Sequence record: NC_041884.1
Reading direction: 5' to 3' (one strand)
Length of the DNA stretch: 64,000 nt
Both the position numbers and the translations under genes were made by a program. Every line of letters starts with the position of its first letter. Position 1 is the first letter of the stretch. The notes beneath the pieces were generated by a model. That model did no database searches. It was not told where the DNA came from and saw nothing but the letters and a program-made list of their open reading frames with translations. Shown here one piece after another: positions 1,664 through 43,421 of this stretch.

Positions 1664-2440
1664 TTATTCTGCTTTAAACGTTTTTAATTTTTGTTCTTTT
1701 TGAATAGTAGGTTTAGATTCTTCTACAGGAAGAAAAATAAACTCTTCTTTATCTTTAGAAAATACATCAGGAACTTCGTCTTCTGCTACTTTCACATCAA
1801 TACCAGCCTCTTTAAGAGTACTAATAACTGATGAAAGAGAATCAGCAGCTAATTTAGCTTTAGCTTCTTCAACTTCTGCACTATCAAATACAGGATCTTC
1901 TCCAAATTGTAAAGTCTTAACTTCACCACCACAGAAGATATCTACTTTAATAACAGATTGAATTACTTCAACTAAAGGAGCAGTCTTATCGTAAGTTAAA
2001 ATAGCTTGAGCGATAAGACCACCAGAACCAACAGTATGTATAGAATCTTCTTTTGGAAGGTCTACAAATAAGTCACGAGTATATTCACTATCATATAGTC
2101 TAACAATGTCATGATTTTTAAAGATAACCATAATTTCAATAGGATCATCTACTTCTTCAATGTCTTCAACAGTAAAGTTTTCATTATGATCAATGCCAGC
2201 ATGATCAACACTGACAAACCATCTTAAAAATCTAGAAAAGTACTTAACAGACCCTGCTAGTGCATACATTGCAAACTCAGTTGGAAAATCTAAATCTTCT
2301 TTATTAAGGGAACGCTCTCCACTTACGAGATCTTCATAAACCATTCCAATTTTAACAACATGTTCATTTCCAACAGTACCACCCATTGTAGCTAACGAAT
2401 CCGCTGCTAAAACACCATTATGGTAAACACATACTGTCAT
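1664..2440 (-). CDS. Ntn-hydrolase peptidase (HslV/proteasome-beta-like) with acidic C-terminal tail
   Basis: N-terminal Thr (MTVCVYHNGVLAADS) and GSGG motif. Confidence 0.7.
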   Translation of the reverse strand: MTVCVYHNGVLAADSLATMGGTVGNEHVVKIGMVYEDLVSGERSLNKEDLDFPTEFAMYALAGSVKYFSRFLRWFVSVDHAGIDHNENFTVEDIEEVDDPIEIMVIFKNHDIVRLYDSEYTRDLFVDLPKEDSIHTVGSGGLIAQAILTYDKTAPLVEVIQSVIKVDIFCGGEVKTLQFGEDPVFDSAEVEEAKAKLAADSLSSVISTLKEAGIDVKVAEDEVPDVFSKDKEEFIFLPVEESKPTIQKEQKLKTFKAE

Positions 2441-2453
2441 ATTATATCCTTAT

Positions 2454-2909
2454 TTAGGTTCTATAATATCTATGTAATGTATCATTGACAGACACTTTTC
2501 TATATTTCCAACCAGGATTAATTGATCTTGCATGGAAGAATACAGCTCCATTTACAGTATCAATTCTTTTACCTTGTTTCTCAGATAAGTATAAAGATTC
2601 AGCTAATTCTTTAATTCTATTAAAAGTTGACTGATCTTTAACACTTAAACCTCTACAATACCAAGGGAATTGACAAGCATGTTTTCGATCTGCTATCACT
2701 CCACATACAGTTTTAGGAAAGGCTTTATGTTGTGTTCTGTTAATAATCGCATTACCGATATTAATCATTTCATTAGAATCTCCACCTCTAGCTTCAAAAT
2801 ACATTGCTTTAGCTAGACATGAGATTTGTGCATTCTCAGCTTTTGCTTTAGTAGATAACACTACAAATGCAATAGTAAGAACTAAAAATGTGATTAACTT
2901 TTTAATCAT
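2454..2909 (-). CDS. SleB-like cell wall hydrolase (Hydrolase_2) with signal peptide
   Basis: CLAKAMYFEARG, NR..H..FP.TVCGVI, QF.W, GAVFFHA motifs. Confidence 0.9.
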   Translation of the reverse strand: MIKKLITFLVLTIAFVVLSTKAKAENAQISCLAKAMYFEARGGDSNEMINIGNAIINRTQHKAFPKTVCGVIADRKHACQFPWYCRGLSVKDQSTFNRIKELAESLYLSEKQGKRIDTVNGAVFFHARSINPGWKYRKVSVNDTLHRYYRT

Positions 2910-3009: not shown

Positions 3010-3411
3010 TTAAAGTGTAGTTACTTCTGAAGTAATATCGTCAGACTGTGAGTTGAGAGCCTCAGCATAAATATCATTAGCTTCTTCTACAGCAGCTAAA
3101 GCAGTCTTATGAGCTTCTTCTACTGCACGTTGCATTAACTCTTGAGGAATGATTTTTAATTCTTCAATTAAGATTTTACATAATGCATCAAGTACAGCAT
3201 TCGCATACATACCTTGAACATTCAATTCATCAATATCGTTTGAATTGTGATACGCTTTTATAGCAAGGTTAGCAATTAACTTCTCTTGCTCTGGGTTTCC
3301 TTTAAAAGCTGCTTCAACATCAGCAATCATCATTTCTACAGCTCGTTCATCAGCTTCTAATTTAGCTTGGATTAAGTCTTGAATTGATGATTGGTGCTTT
3401 TGTTCAGTCAT
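3010..3411 (-). CDS. helical hypothetical protein
   Basis: ORF with strong codon bias and an SD sequence. Confidence 0.6.
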   Translation of the reverse strand: MTEQKHQSSIQDLIQAKLEADERAVEMMIADVEAAFKGNPEQEKLIANLAIKAYHNSNDIDELNVQGMYANAVLDALCKILIEELKIIPQELMQRAVEEAHKTALAAVEEANDIYAEALNSQSDDITSEVTTL

Positions 3412-3486: not shown

Positions 3487-3786
3487 TTAATGTATTACAA
3501 AGTAGGCACCTAAAGATATAAGCATATATCCAATAGAAGCTACTAAGAATGTAAGCCCTGAACTAGAATAATAGTATTCTTTTAGTACAGAGATTAAACA
3601 TCCAAGCAATAACGCTTGGAATAAAGTAATGTCTTTCCAAATAAAAGGAGAGATCATATATAAAAAATAGGATAAAGCAAATAATGCTAAAATAGCATAA
3701 CCAATTCGATTTGTAATAGATTTAAATCTATCGCTTAAGGATGGTTTAATTACATTTCCATCTTTATCAATGTAAATCAATTTCAT
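3487..3786 (-). CDS. membrane protein
   Basis: three hydrophobic segments. Confidence 0.6.
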   Translation of the reverse strand: MKLIYIDKDGNVIKPSLSDRFKSITNRIGYAILALFALSYFLYMISPFIWKDITLFQALLLGCLISVLKEYYYSSSGLTFLVASIGYMLISLGAYFVIH

Positions 3787-3808
3787 TTAATACTCAATTA
3801 ATAGGAAA

Positions 3809-13016: not shown

Positions 13017-16000
13017 TTGTTGTCTCGATAGTTGTATTGTCTTCACTTAATTTGACAATAGTTTTTGCAAATTCATCAGCGACTAGACGTTCTAGTTTTT
13101 CTGATAACTCATACATTTCTGGAACTTCTGCTCCTGACTCGTCTGCATATTTAATTACACAAGCAATAGCTTTGTCTACAAACTCAAGAGCAAGAGATTC
13201 TGAATACTTAACACCATAACGTACTTTATTGATTAAACCATAAATATCGTTAAATGGATTTTTTACTGAATAAAAGTTCGAAGAGTTGCTAGTAGTTGTT
13301 TTAGCTTTATTATTGGGATGTACCTTCCAGCCTTGAGCACTATAGTAGTCCTCATAATCACCTTCAGTCCAACCTGCATACCCACCAGTAGTTCCTGTTT
13401 TACCTGCACCATACATACCTGTGTACATAGGAGCAAACTCAGTGATATTAGCATAATCACTTTCTGGAACAGTGTAATCACTAGTAGCTGTAACACCTAG
13501 TTCATTTGAAAAAATATCTTCGATCTTAAGTTTAATTTCTTTACCATTAGATGCTGCCCGTACAACCATTTCAGGGAGTTCATTGTCAATTTTACCAATT
13601 ACCCCAAAGTAACGAGTTGCCGTTTCATCTTTAAGATCCATTATCTTTTAAGTAGTTCGTTAGACTACTTAGAGTAATCATTAATATTAACCTTATTATA
13701 ATAAATTTCAGTATAACCTCCAAAAATATTACCATTAAAATCTACTGATTTGTTAGATTTTTTAATATTTTGTTCGATTAAAAATAAATCAGGCAATAAT
13801 CCGTTCAATAGTATCTCTTAAGTTTATTTCAACATCAGGATAAAATTTTCTCATTTCTTGTCTTAATTTATATAATCGTCTTTTTGGATTAATACTTAAA
13901 CCATATTTATAATAAATACTATTATTAATTTTTATTTCAAATTCGTATAAAAAGATAGTTTCTAAAGGTCTACGTTGAACTGTAGTTTTATTTAAAAATC
14001 CACTTTGGTTATTTCTAGAGCATGTAGGACAATTACTTCTAGATTGTAAATAGTCATTAGTGCGTGGTGTCCATGTGTTAGAACATTTTTTGCATTCTAA
14101 TTTTATAAATTTAGCATACTCTTGATAACTTCTAGTTAATAAAATGTATAAATCATCTTGGATAACTTTAGAAAGAATTGTAGAATATTTTAATAAATTA
14201 TAAAAATTAGATTTTTGAACTAATGCGTACATGAACTAACTCCCTTAACAAAATCATGAAATAAGGGAAAATAAATATTACCACATGTCTTATGAACTAG
14301 AGCTAATGATATTTTAGTAGTAATTTTAGATAAATCTTGATAGATATATTCATACTCTGAAAAAGTTGTATCAATATAAAGTTTTAAATCCTTTTCTGAT
14401 TTAAAACGTCTTGATTTTTCATTACAAACGCCTGACGTAAGTTTACAATCATTACAGAATTTAGGCTTATTATAAATCAAATTAAACCAATTACTTATAA
14501 CTTCTTTTTGACAAGTATTACAAATTACTAGTATTTTAGATTTGACATTTTTATAAGGTTCTACTTCTCTAATAAATGAAAAACAATTTTCACTTTGAAT
14601 AATCATTTTATATTTTTGAATTTGAAACAAATCTACTCCTCTATATTTCTATAGATGTTGAGACTATATCTTCATCCTATTAAATAGGAGTTTTATGTTT
14701 CCCTTTAATCCGTTCGGAACCACTTGGCGGTAGACCTAAATTTAATTTAGGAATTACTAGTCGTTGAACCTTCCTCTATATTACTAGAGGCTTGGCTGCT
14801 GATTGTCCATTACAAAGAATATATTAATATATTCATCTTCTTTATTTTCAAACATTCACGCTCATCTTTACAGATCACGTTGTAGTTAAAGAAGCTTTAG
14901 GAGTTTCCAGCAATTAATAAAATTTTGTCGACTACATTACTGTAGAAGGTGTCAATCTATTATTTAACACTACTGAAGAAAGCGCTCATATTGACGTGTG
15001 ACACCGTCATAATTGTTAACAAGAGTTTCTTTAATTATCTCTTTTCATTTCCTATCTAAAGTTTGGAAATAGTTCAGACTATCTAATCACCTTCAACAAC
15101 AAATATTTGCTTTGTTAAGGTGTTGGGCGCTCGTGGAGAGGTTATTGTTATCTTACTCACTCTCTAGTCGTTTAACGTTCTTGTCTCTTAATTAAGATAA
15201 GACAAGCTTCGCACAGTGTCGCCTACTAAGCTTCCACTGTTAGCTACAATATATAAATATAATAATGATACAGACTATTGGAATCTAACCAATTCATCCT
15301 AAGTTTACAAAGATGTTTCCCAACATTCTAAGCTCTTGGGGCGTTCACCTTTCACCAAGTCTGCATTACGAATTATCTCGGATTGGTAGGCCTTATGGGA
15401 TTCTAACCCATGATCTCACAAGTTATGAGCTTGGTGCTTTAGAACGCTAAGCTAAAGGCCTGTAATACCGAAAGAATTGGCATCGCCTGGAGGAATCGAA
15501 CCTCTCACGTCCTTCCTGCTTTTTACGTACCAGCTTAGAAGGCTGGTGCAGGGGCAAGCGACACAGATGATTAATTTCATTTTGTAAATTTATATAAGTA
15601 ACACCCTCTTTTGATCGAGGTTCACCCAATTATTCGATTACCATTTCTGATAAAAGCCACTCACATTTAATGGATATCCATAACTACAACTAAATCTGGA
15701 CTTGAATAAATCTCAGGAGTATTAGTATAGTTAATGGTTGCTGCGCTTACTTCTTGTTTAGGTACATGAATGAAGAAATCTTTTTTAATTTTATCCCAAA
15801 CAATAGCACAATAGACTTCAGATTTAATTGTCTTACTAATATTACGATAAAGAACAATTACTTGTTGTAATAATCCAGTAGGAATTTTTGGAATTTCAGA
15901 ATGATCAGGAGTAAAAGAAGTTTCACATTCTTTTGTCAAACCTAAAGCTTTGAAATCTTTTAATTCAGTAGGGATTACAAATGTACCAATAGGAGACTTA

Positions 16001-36994: not shown

Positions 36995-37066
36995 TTGAGA
37001 AAATCAGATTCGAACTGATCACGGCCAGAAATTATTCTAGTGCTCTACCAACTGAGCTATTTCACA
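36995..37066 (-). tRNA. pseudo-tRNA with a collapsed anticodon loop
   Basis: TAGCTCAGTTGGTAGAGC D-arm, ATCAG-TTCGAAT-CTGAT T-arm, anticodon arm CTAGA-ATAATT-TCTGG, no CCA. Confidence 0.7.
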
Positions 37067-37830: not shown

Positions 37831-37949
37831 TAAATCACATAAGGATGCTAATAGAAATCAGGAACGGTACAATCTAAGAACAACATTACATATAAGGACA
37901 AAATAATGAATTTTTTTTTGAAATTCTATTAGCATCCTTATGTGATTTA
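37831..37949 (-). repeat. perfect 26-bp inverted repeat with a 67-nt loop
   Basis: TAAATCACATAAGGATGCTAATAGAA at 37831-37856 and its complement at 37924-37949. Confidence 0.9.
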
Positions 37950-37963
37950 AAAAGGTTAAAAAT

Positions 37964-38310
37964 ATATGGAAGACAGATAGTGTGTTGTTACACCAAATGC
38001 TCTAAGGGTCTGTATATGCGTCTCTAGATACTTTATTTCCACGTTGTTTCTCTAGATTAAGTGTAAGGCTTCGCCCATCATACACGTTGCTCCAGCATAA
38101 CTTCTAGAGGTGTCGGGAGCGCAATCTAACATTCATGCCTTTACCTAACCGCCCATATTACTTTCTGCATTACATATACAACTGTACTGGTCCTTCCCCT
38201 GAGTTTCTACGTTTAGACATCTTTTGGAATTAGATACTTATTACGGATCACTCTTGCAACTCTTTAAAAGATGGCTACCTTCAGGCCAACTTCCTAACTG
38301 CCTTTCATAT
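37964..38310 (-). ncRNA. about 350-nt ncRNA whose 5' part resembles 23S rRNA helices 42-44 (uL11-binding site)
   Basis: GTTAGGAAGTTGGCCTGAAGGTAGCCATCTTTTAAAGAG...CGTAATA...CTAAT...AAGATGT-CTAAAC; closed by ATATGAAAGGCAG/CTGTCTTCCATAT. Confidence 0.75.
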
Positions 38311-38326
38311 ATTTTCAATCACACTG

Positions 38327-39220: not shown

Positions 39221-40880
39221 TATAAAATTACATTTACTGTTGGTTCTTTCGACAACACTTTTCGGATTTTATATGAAGATCGTATCAAAGGTTCTAGCTT
39301 CGATCCTCTGTTGTCATGCACCTCTAAACATTTGTGTGGTAACCCACTCACTGAACCTTATCAGCTTGAACTCAATGTGCCACCCAGAGATTACTCTGAC
39401 CTCATTTATGTTGTAAATGTAATTTTATATTTAAATAATAAGAGCCAAGTCTTCACAAGAGGATGGATTCGAACCACCGACAACAGTAGGGATTTTACTG
39501 CCTACAATACTCTACCGACTGAGCTACTCTGCAATTTCCACTCTCTTATTATTTAGATGGTAAGAATATAAGTTAGTGTTAAGACGTTGATACATTAGGT
39601 ATTACCCTAACGCCAAGAGTTGAACTTGTTAAAAACCTTCTGTAACCCAACAACTATCTTTATTACTGGACAGTAATCATCTGAGATTATTAACCTATAC
39701 CGTATTCTTACCTCTAAATAATAATTAAAAGACATCTAATAACCTAACTTCAGATAAGGGTACTTACTCGATTATCATGAGACTCTACTAAATGTCTTTT
39801 AATTATTATTTAAAAGGTGTGAGGTACAACTCTCACAATGAACCATGTAGCCATTTTGGTTAGCGTCAAGCTGTATACAGCTTAGTTTCTCTAGTCAGCC
39901 CGCTTTAGGTTGTCCCTAATTGTGTGATATCAACACTACCATTTTTCTATCTTACGATAACACCAATGATCAAGTGCTTGTGGTACTAGAAGTCATTAAG
40001 GTGAATATGCCTTTATAGATCATACCAAATCTACAGGCCCATCACTCCCTTCAAATTTTATTACGCCACATCCTGTTTGGACTTACACCGTGTTGGATGT
40101 TATTTATCGGTAGAATTTGAGCCATTAACCAGAGCGCATTTATTAACTTATACTTTCATATAAGATTAGACCTTTTAGAGTGTCCTGATTTCTCAAGCTG
40201 AACTCTATTACCATCTCATATAAGTTGTCAGACTTATACTAACTACTTTTAGAATTACTCCTAATTTCGAGTGTCTCTACTATACAAAGGATAAATCCTT
40301 CTTAGCTATTATAACCATATGAAATAGAACCTCACTTAGAATTATAATATTTAGGTAATTGAGGAAAAACATGAGAATATAAAAGCATACTGCCATAATA
40401 TACGAGCCGTTAAGCCATCAGAATCGAACTGAGTCCTCTTTTATACCTCGATGCCCTTCATTATCGAAAAAGGGCTTTGGCACAATTGTGTTGTGCATCT
40501 CGTATCACTTGAGGTAATAACTCTTGGAATCTAGCAGAGGAGCGACCTCTCTTATTTTATATACCGATTGGATTCTTGTCTCGGTTTGTGGGTCTATTAC
40601 ATGTCATCGTTTCTCAGTTGACAGTGAGGGATCTACAAAAATTGGAATAGACTGACAATGGAGGTAATCATTAATCCCCTATTACAGAGATTAATCCTAT
40701 AGAATGCCTAAGAATTTCAGTTGCAATCTTACATTCAAAAGGACTTATATCAATTAGTATATTGGACAATATGTTCTGGAGACGGATTAGGCGTCTCACT
40801 CTTTTACTAAAAATTAGTAAACGCTTTTAGCCTCGGATTAAGAGACATTCCACTACATTTTAAGCTACAGACCTCAATAC
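39221..40880 (-). ncRNA. 1.7-kb non-coding cluster of stem-closed structured RNAs
   Basis: no credible ORF; abutting inverted repeats 39221/39429, 39432/39555, 39552/39718, 39715/39812; several T-loop-like hairpins. Confidence 0.7.
39454..39533 (-). tRNA. pseudo-tRNA with an expanded or alternative anticodon arm
   Basis: TAGCTCAGTCGGTAGAGT D-arm, GGTGG-TTCGAAT-CCATC T-arm, GTAGG-CAGTAAAATC-CCTAC (10-nt loop), bulged acceptor, no CCA. Confidence 0.65.
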
Positions 40881-40905
40881 TTCCAATCATACTAAATTCT
40901 ATACA

Positions 40906-43347: not shown

Positions 43348-43421
43348 TGGTCCAAAATCTGAGATTCGAACTCAGACGCAGGGTTTTAGGGACCCCTGTG
43401 CTACCATTACACCAATTCTGG
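43348..43421 (-). tRNA. tRNA with CUA anticodon (amber-suppressor type), C at position 33
   Basis: CCAGAAT/ATTTTGG + A + CCA; GGGGT-CCCTAAA-ACCCT anticodon arm; CTGAG-TTCGAAT-CTCAG. Confidence 0.8.

Follow-up and report, generated by a model that had tools for sequence, protein, structure and literature searches.

What occupies a 530-nt gap without coding sequences (CDS) in the jumbo phage vB_AbaM_ME3 of Acinetobacter (234.9 kb)? We have analyzed a stretch of 64,000 nt from its sequence record, NC_041884.1 (the window, to which all positions refer unless another locus is named), in which this gap extends from the end of gp274 (38327) to the start of gp275 (37797). It contains a non-coding, stem-closed RNA of ~357 nt, here called the ME3 RNA, at 38315-37959 on the minus strand, which is also the coding strand for every gene around it. 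The GC content of the RNA is 41-44%, versus 25-30% in the flanking DNA, and its core motif has a single copy in the window. A first-pass annotation made from the sequence alone had described positions 38200-38310 as a mimic of the GTPase-associated centre (GAC) of the 23S rRNA, the domain bound by ribosomal protein uL11. Our analysis indicates that the GAC mimic is a frame around the entire ME3 RNA, and that the RNA and its large family are very probably a functional mimic of the GAC / L11-binding-domain fold, maintained by selection.

A ribosomal fold enclosing the whole RNA

The Rfam model of the bacterial large-subunit (LSU) rRNA (LSU_rRNA_bacteria, RF02541) aligns 38231-38311 (-) to its positions 1079-1158, which are the GAC, with 13.9 bits and an E value of 0.031 in a search of 366 nt. 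This is the search by which the first-pass annotation had proposed to check its reading. The match is marginal by itself, and becomes decisive because of the family evidence given below. The resemblance to LSU rRNA is visible only in narrow searches, of the 366-nt RNA or of single members; Rfam scans of the whole window at the gathering threshold and of 1 kb at E<=10 gave no match at the site of the ME3 RNA. A distant BLAST search led to a homologue in the Ralstonia phage RSP15, located in an unannotated 630-nt gap within a tRNA cluster, with a perfect TTGACA-17-TATAAT promoter 17 nt upstream. The two RNAs have common blocks across ~340 nt. Their terminal stems are fully complementary in each phage and yet different in sequence (AUAUAUGAAAGGCAGUUAG / CUAUCUGUCUUCCAUAUAU in ME3, AUUCUGUAUAUCCCCUUCG / CUAAGGGGAUAUACAGAAU in RSP15).

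Viral contigs were scanned from two anchors. A search of IMG/VR with the 16-mer GCCATCTTTTAAAGAG, within helix 43 (H43), returned 90 stretches, 50 of them (36 distinct) with a full H43-like hairpin. The invariance of H43 in a set retrieved by H43 is an ascertainment artefact, and therefore a second scan was anchored on helix 44 (H44). It gave at least 120 loci, with 70 new distinct members among the matches listed. The family comprises well over a hundred phage RNAs. Of these, 98 distinct members pooled from both scans (the H44-anchored part being the matches listed) were analyzed. Alignment A2, with its model R1, contains 33 family cores from which the insert had been taken out, while alignment A4 is an independent H44-anchored set of 65 members, from the matches listed.

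The likeness to the GAC is found in both directions. For the shortest member (locus L009) the LSU model gives 23.6 bits (E=8e-6) over model positions 1092-1152, and the alignment takes in helix 42 (H42), H43, the junction and H44, interrupted by an insertion of 55 nt. Conversely, a global alignment of R1 to nt 1043-1115 of the E. coli 23S has 55.5 bits (E=4e-14), the next best match in the rrn operon having 10 bits. The three helices surround one junction in the order of the rRNA, and the insert breaks the 5' strand of H44. As for actual LSU genes, both scores (13.9 bits for ME3 and 23.6 for L009) lie far below the RF02541 gathering threshold of 50 bits, and the Rfam scan detected no rRNA gene in the window.

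Covariation extends to every helix. In A2 the closing stem shows compensatory changes in 12/12 pairs, and the covariation score was 0.51 versus 0.17 in shuffles, none of 500 being as high. In A4 double changes were found in 18 of the 22 pairs (score 0.54 versus 0.16; again 0/500 as high). There the closing stem has compensatory changes in 11/12 pairs, and H43, which is 98.7% paired, has double changes in 5/6. The 1058-1080 pair of A4 occurs as UA (26), AU (21), GC (15), UG (2) and CG (1).

Two tertiary interactions covary as well. The junction pair 1082/1086 is U-A in 35, C-G in 15, A-U in 8 and something else in 7 of the 65 members of A4. That A1084-A1086 might pair with the UUU linker instead was considered and rejected, as it is 1082/1086 that covaries. 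The other interaction is the base triple of 1072 with the pair 1092-1099, which Conn, Gutell and Draper in 1998, and Conn in 1999, reportedly described from L11-RNA crystal structures. Among the 98 members this triple is C/C-G in 71 and U/U-A in 25, and the rule is kept in 96/98 with two exceptions. Both states are present within the ME3 subclass, and therefore the switch has occurred repeatedly. Genuine 23S genes from a scan of genome contigs follow the same rule (U/U-A in 80, G/G-C in 2 and U/U-G in 2), and the E. coli and Acinetobacter 23S have C/C-G. The third state, G1072 with G1092-C1099, was observed in the 23S genes of Latescibacterota at loci L260 and L270.

In the H44-retrieved set the nucleotides G1055, U1060, G1063, U1066, G1071, A1077, A1084, A1085, G1087, A1088, G1089 and U1090 are invariant. 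Within H43 of the family, U1060 and A1077 never change, 1061 can be U, A, G or C, and the loop always has 9 nt. Position 1061 varies in natural rRNA too, where U1061A is a known stabilising variant (PMC1802607). The uL11 C-terminal domain contacts nucleotides 1058-1060, 1062-1065, 1075-1083 and 1088 (PMC1802607), and all of them are in the conserved or pair-compensated part of the family. The family frame reproduces the secondary structure of the L11-binding domain (H42-H43-H44, nt ~1044-1115) together with both tertiary signatures tested. The first-pass annotation had argued for selection on the fold rather than a decaying rRNA fragment, and this is borne out by the reciprocal model matches, by the covariation seen in all helices and in two tertiary interactions, and by the size of the family.

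The details of that annotation were compared with the genuine E. coli rrlB sequence. The 29/40 ungapped identity that it had given between the minus-strand sequence GUUAGGAAGUUGGCCUGAAGGUAGCCAUCUUUUAAAGAGU and E. coli nt 1051-1090 is exact on rrlB, U1058-A1080 is indeed exchanged for A-U in ME3, and the base equivalent to A1067 is a G, at 38282. Three of its further assignments did not hold. Its local H42, GUUAG (38298-38294) with CUAAU (38233-38229), is not a pair, and RSP15 and other homologues lack it. Its local H44 loop CGUAAUA (38245-38239) is absent in RSP15, and the true H44, GGUGUAACAACACA, is at 37994-37981, outside the stretch where it had placed the mimic. Its echo of the H41 side, AAGAUGU..CUAAAC, falls within a variable hairpin that homologues have not kept. 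These three are ME3-specific coincidences and, being unconserved, leave the enclosing frame as the GAC mimic. The mimic had also been presented as the 5' domain of a stem-closed RNA; the closure is correct (20/22 pairs), the placement is not, since the frame encloses the whole RNA. What had been overlooked is a 264-nt domain inserted into H44. The features are collected in Table 1.

Table 1. Features of the ME3 RNA in the window (nt numbers are those of E. coli 23S rRNA), and two cyanobacterial composite RNAs with positions in their own loci
Feature	Position	Strand	Remarks
Closing stem, 5' strand (H42 equivalent)	38294..38315	-	Pairs with 37980-37959 at 20/22 positions; g38294 is G1055
G1056 equivalent	38293	-	Single nucleotide before the H43-like hairpin
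H43-like hairpin, nt 1057-1081, AAGUUGGC-CUGAAGGUA-GCCAUCUU	38268..38292	-	The Rfam LSU model places it at H43
H43 loop, 9 nt	38284-38276	-	A1067 equivalent is G38282; 1072 equivalent is U38277
Junction UUAAAGAGU, nt 1082-1090	38259..38267	-	Includes the U1082/A1086 pair, G1087 and A1088
Domain inserted into H44 after U1090	37998..38258	-	Multi-helix; ME3/RSP15 subclass only; from alignment A3 and consensus fold
Insert base helix	UGC 38258-38256 with GCA 38000-37998	-	Covaries: UGC/GCA, UCC/GGA, UUC/GAA
Insert block CAGGGGAAGGAC	38190..38201	-	Invariant in 9 subclass members
Predicted pairing of AGGG with CCCU	38200-38197 with 38008-38005	-	Shows no variation
Insert 10-bp long-range helix, 5' strand	38172..38181	-	Partner 38019-38010; compensatory changes in 8/10 pairs, 9 sequences
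Insert small hairpin GGGCGAAGCC	38067..38076	-	Kept in the subclass
Insert 3'-side block AGACCCUUAGAG	38000..38011	-	As search pattern, retrieved more subclass members from viral contigs
UUU linker	37997-37995	-	Precedes the H44 hairpin
H44-like hairpin GGU-GUAACA-ACACA, GGUGUAACAACACA, nt 1090-1103	37981..37994	-	U37992 and A37985 are the 1092-1099 pair
Closing stem, 3' strand	37959..37980	-	c37980 is C1104; pairing and covariation evidence as for the 5' strand
Composite RNA, locus L248, ~200 nt	3100-3290	+	Closed by its own stem
Composite RNA, locus L229, ~200 nt	about 2400-2600	-	Closed by its own stem

Inserts, relatives and tRNA arrays

The members of the family have a common order: the 5' strand of the closing stem, GGAAGU[U/A]GGC-UUAGAAGCA-GCCAUCUUUUAAAGAGU, a variable insert, (C)UUUGG[C/U]GUAA[N]A[G/A]CACAC and the 3' strand of the closing stem. 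The conserved block that follows the insert is H44 (E. coli equivalent GCGUAAUAGC), of which every complete member has exactly one copy. In ME3 it is found 264 nt downstream of a junction that agrees with the Rfam bacterial consensus UuuAAaGAgu at all of the upper-case (conserved) positions. The insert is always placed after U1090, measures 27-367 nt (median 151) and has a covarying helix at its base, e.g. GAGG/CCUC, GGCC/GGCC or GCGG/CCGC. Inserts vary from subclass to subclass. The ME3 subclass includes ME3, RSP15 and at least 7 metagenomic members, and its inserts also contain further covarying hairpins.

Unannotated members were found in cultured phages of Aeromonas (4_4572), Pseudomonas (pf16, UNO-G1W1, Milchi and Astolliot), Cronobacter (GAP32), Pectobacterium (CBB), Vibrio (2.275.O), Xanthomonas (XacN1) and Paenibacillus (Pd_22F). 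Rfam 15 has no family of its own for these RNAs. We found no earlier description in the open-access full-text literature, including the work on GOLLD/ROOL, tRNA arrays, jumbo phages and discovery of non-coding RNA, and one may exist elsewhere.

Several readings of the ME3 insert were considered and rejected. The LSU model gave no second match that could be an rRNA counterpart of the inserted domain. The block GGGGAAGGACCAGUACAG was compared with a permuted sarcin-ricin loop (SRL) and with an H42 GGGAAGGCCCAGAC-like sequence, and was discarded as either since its AGUA positions vary (GUGC, GCGC, GCAC, GUAA), 30 nt are inserted at this place in one member, and no second match was given by the LSU model. 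A weak match to whalefall-1 (E=7.8) was set aside. A group I intron with exon flanks was also dismissed; the intron models do not match, and the boundaries are those of H42.

These RNAs tend to be located next to tRNAs. A tRNA is present within 2 kb in 71 of the 103 distinct loci, three or more tRNAs in 42, and in 34 a tRNA end or start is no more than 30 nt from the closing stem. In all cases (278/278) the nearby tRNAs have the same orientation as the GAC-mimic RNA. Some of these arrays are shared with tmRNA and GOLLD; a tmRNA adjoins the mimic in L014 and is near it in L253. In RSP15 (locus L002, ~3575-3800, minus strand) the mimic is immediately followed on its 3' side by an element of ~225 nt with an acceptor-like stem, GUAGUGGAU...AUCCACUAC, and a T-arm; the tmRNA model gives a weak match (20.6 bits) to its 3' part, and ARAGORN gives no call.

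Further observations concern the surroundings of the ME3 RNA. Directly 3' of it, at 37838-37946, there is an inverted repeat with perfect arms of ~21-23 bp (AUCACAUAAGGAUGCUAAUAGAA / UUCUAUUAGCAUCCUUAUGUGAU), a loop of ~63 nt and a U-rich run after it. Both strands can fold, and the repeat lacks conservation in RSP15. It could serve as a terminator or processing site, or be a separate small RNA. A relatively GC-rich, unannotated gap of 1.37 kb (39533-40905) adjoins a tRNA and may hold further non-coding RNAs, and a 77-nt segment at ~40063-40139 (-) has 87% identity to unannotated regions of the Klebsiella phages KP13-26, FKP3 and KP2025. There are three unusual tRNA genes, at 43348-43421, 36995-37066 and 39454-39532, all on the minus strand. 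Among them are one with a CUA anticodon, a potential amber suppressor that ARAGORN calls tRNA-Pyl, one with an aberrant anticodon loop ('tRNA-OTHER' in RefSeq), and a tRNA-Tyr with ~20 nt extra in the anticodon region. Finally, a group I intron (14639-14975, minus strand; Rfam 81 bits) is near tRNA-Leu(TAG) and tRNA-Met at 15267-15461.

A related arrangement appears in cyanobacteria. The scan of genome contigs mostly retrieved genuine 23S genes with the U/U-A triple, which its pattern did not exclude and which served as the rRNA control set. It also retrieved 29 cyanobacterial loci (between L217 and L335) with a GAC element outside any rRNA gene, from Microcoleus, Nostoc, Moorena, Oscillatoria and others; plasmids of Dolichospermum and Kovacikia (NZ_CP051207.1 and NZ_CP083583.1) have this element too. 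They are located in dense tRNA arrays, chromosomal or plasmid-borne. Like the phage RNA, they are stand-alone GAC mimics in tRNA arrays, and they have the U/U-A triple. Unlike it, their GAC element runs through H44 without an insert, keeps more of H42 and is above the LSU gathering score (55 bits, model 1077-1160). Besides, the SRL sequence AGUACGAGAGGAA forms a hairpin ~75 nt upstream of it (72-84 nt on the 5' side, and 73-76 nt except at two loci), whereas in true 23S genes the SRL lies ~1,540-4,080 nt downstream of the GAC. The composite, ~200 nt long and closed by its own stem, would by its sequence mimic both halves of the ribosomal factor-binding site. Translation inhibitors induce a long tRNA array of this type in Anabaena, where it aids survival (PMC8421152); no rRNA-like element is mentioned in that paper. 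In the phages, near-canonical SRL-like hairpins were found in the inserts of two members, L121 (GCAU-AGUACGGGAGGAA-AUGC) and L143 (AGUACAGAAGGAA). Over the inserts of the family they are not enriched (5 found versus 5.1 expected in shuffles), and ME3 has none.

Possible modes of action

We propose that the RNA would be transcribed with, or like, the phage tRNAs and freed by tRNA processing, and that once released it would take the compact tertiary structure of the GAC. It would then work in trans, as a molecular decoy of the ribosomal site. A free copy cannot stand in for this site inside ribosomes, and therefore the simplest mode is the titration of something that recognises it. The decoy would divert away from ribosomes a host factor that attacks the L11 stalk or docks on it, a candidate being a translation-targeting toxin or immune effector similar to Tre23. 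Phage translation would continue meanwhile, in parallel to the counter-defence role proposed for phage tRNA arrays. Phage tRNAs are widely seen as counter-defence cargo, and a decoy or sponge function would fit this niche. We estimate the probability of a trans-acting GAC decoy, as the whole explanation, at roughly 0.45. Taken separately, it is likely that the RNA acts through binding a protein that recognises the GAC. That this protein is an effector, whether of a defence system or a toxin, and not uL11 alone, is a tentative proposal with somewhat less than even chances.

There is precedent for attacks on both elements. The toxin Tre23 ADP-ribosylates H44 of the GAC, at nt 1095-1098 (PMC8661411), and VapC toxins that cleave the SRL are known, as cited in that paper. 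The fusion to an SRL in the cyanobacterial relatives and the residence in tRNA arrays suggest that the factor-binding site of the 50S subunit is where the selected target acts. These two features, together with the precedents of Tre23 and VapC, are the reason for which we favour a decoy directed against toxins or defence systems.

A number of observations weigh against a decoy of this kind. The predicted free energy of the ME3 RNA is similar to that of shuffled sequences (z=-0.11), and no consensus promoter or terminator was found at it. No conserved family of neighbouring proteins accompanies the mimic, the largest cluster being present in 8/103 loci; the proteins that flank it in ME3 and RSP15 have no informative match in Pfam or PHROG. 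The differences in H44 (G1090', A1101, the UUU linker and the insert) could alter or block protein binding. A1067 is A in 44/65 members (68%) and G in ME3, versus A in 84/84 genuine 23S genes, while A1095, which is A in ME3, is C or U in 4/33 members, and 1095-1097 are variable. Not every member would therefore serve an enzyme that requires these bases. A1067 and A1095, universally conserved where the factors and thiopeptides bind, do not have this conservation in the family, and the relaxed A1067 in particular argues against a version of the decoy based on the face of EF-G and thiostrepton. The ME3 mimic also differs from the GAC of Acinetobacter at more than 10 positions, including the 1058-1080 pair, the loop and the triple, which means that there was no recent capture from the host.

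The relaxation of A1067 and 1095-1097 is what would be expected if only the L11 face counted, as in a sponge for uL11 or stalk proteins. Here the selected function would be to bind free uL11, possibly with uL10/bL12, and no defence effector would be involved; new ribosomes would lack L11, the synthesis of (p)ppGpp that depends on RelA would be blunted, or the feedback of ribosomal proteins would be altered. Binding of free uL11 by the mimic is probable in itself, because its contact nucleotides are conserved or changed only in compensated pairs. All contacts of its C-terminal domain are in the most conserved part of the mimic, and the minimal 58-nt rRNA domain binds L11 alone (PMC1802607). However, L11 already assembled in ribosomes would stay in place, the closing stem has neither conserved sequence nor a kink-turn to recruit uL10, and the cyanobacterial fusion to an SRL hairpin, which is not an L11 site, would be left unexplained. 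We consider this explanation unlikely, and place it second after the decoy against toxins or defence.

In third place, the GAC fold might be only a scaffold, a stable and nuclease-resistant clamp that joins the ends of the RNA while the inserted domain does the work. In the ME3 subclass the insert is large, with conserved blocks and covarying helices of its own, and different subclasses have different inserts. Nevertheless the GAC frame is the sole element common to all members, some inserts have only about 27-60 nt, and the cyanobacterial relatives have none. A clamp would have no need for an rRNA-like tertiary triple, a 1082/1086 pair or an L11 face, and this explanation seems to us less probable still.

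More doubtful is a direct binding of translational GTPases (EF-G, IF2, RF3, BipA or HflX-like) or of RelA off the ribosome, a kind of ribosome in pieces. The cyanobacterial composites unite SRL-like and GAC-like elements, which are the rRNA contacts of all translational GTPases, and Munishkin and Wool are said to have found in 1997 that EF-G binds oligonucleotides of each of the two. The SRL-like hairpins of L121 and L143 go in the same direction. Against it, ME3 and most phage members lack such a motif, whose frequency in the inserts is that of shuffles, A1067, important for EF-G, is not conserved, and sequestering an elongation factor would hurt the phage's own translation. A cis-acting leader of gp275 (37797-37192, downstream on the same strand) or a functionless, decaying fragment of a captured 23S gene, for which speak the position of the ME3 RNA upstream of that gene and the marginal rRNA similarity of ME3 alone, is effectively excluded: the downstream neighbours are different at every locus, often tRNAs and never an adjacent ribosomal-protein gene, well over 100 divergent copies keep all pairs by compensatory changes, the boundaries of the RNA match H42 precisely, and the ME3 copy does not derive from the host 23S.

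If the decoy is right, these RNAs make up a very large class of viral non-coding RNA that has gone unannotated. Its conserved core would copy the structure of a functional centre of the ribosome almost exactly. Mimicry of rRNA by short operators of ribosomal-protein mRNAs would be widened to an entire tertiary domain that viruses encode in trans. The decoy would also give a testable function to the non-tRNA cargo of phage tRNA arrays, long a puzzle, and predict immune or regulatory host factors that act on the L11 stalk. In the covariation of 1072/1092/1099 and of 1082/1086, evolution has replicated the GAC fold independently. The 58-nt rRNA domain is among the best-studied RNA tertiary folds, with established assays for L11, thiostrepton and folding, and experimental access is easy with minimal family members of only about 90-110 nt. 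A wider proposition, that phages, and the mobile tRNA arrays of cyanobacteria, encode decoys of ribosome parts (copies of the L11-stalk domain, joined in cyanobacteria to a copy of the SRL) that protect ribosomes as they soak up GAC-directed immune effectors, toxins or antibiotics, is speculative and on balance rather unlikely. If true, it would define a new class of RNA-based counter-defence, and antiphage systems targeting the GAC would be common and still undiscovered.

Comparison with known systems

The closest system is the GAC of the 23S rRNA itself (E. coli nt 1051-1108). The phage RNA shares with it the closing helix, an H43 stem of 8 positions with the non-Watson-Crick pairs U1060-U1078 and N1061-A1077, the 9-nt loop, the UUAAAGAGU junction with its 1082/1086 pair, G1087-C1102, the H44 loop GUAAYA and the coordinated triple. 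It differs in being a free-standing gene in tRNA arrays and not a part of a 2.9-kb rRNA, and in having an insert of 27-367 nt, a UUU linker, a G1090' before G1091, and A instead of U at 1101.

The leaders of ribosomal-protein genes (the L10 leader, RF00557, and the L1, S8 and S15 operators) are also RNAs outside the ribosome that copy a protein-binding site of rRNA. They are, however, cis-regulatory segments of mRNA that copy a local motif, whereas the phage RNA is encoded in trans, contains a whole tertiary domain and has no ribosomal-protein gene nearby. Its neighbours are tRNAs and unrelated hypothetical proteins, so that it is not the 5' untranslated region of such a gene, and Rfam gave no match to an L11-binding leader for the ME3 RNA.

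GOLLD and ROOL share with the mimic the niche in tRNA arrays of large phages, and GOLLD is present in one of the family loci (L054). They assemble into RNA-only cages (PMC12286853). In contrast to the mimic they have no rRNA resemblance, and there is no relation to it in sequence or structure; the Rfam models of GOLLD, ROOL, tmRNA and group I introns gave no match at the mimic, either in the window or in 14 loci of the family.

Mimicry by RNA has precedents in the phage pseudo-ToxI antitoxin mimic (PMC3475682), a decoy in phage-host conflict, and in 6S RNA, which imitates a promoter. The logic proposed here for the GAC mimic is the same, an abundant RNA imitating what a protein naturally binds and so titrating that protein. 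What sets the GAC mimic apart from both is that the structure copied is a domain of the ribosomal RNA.

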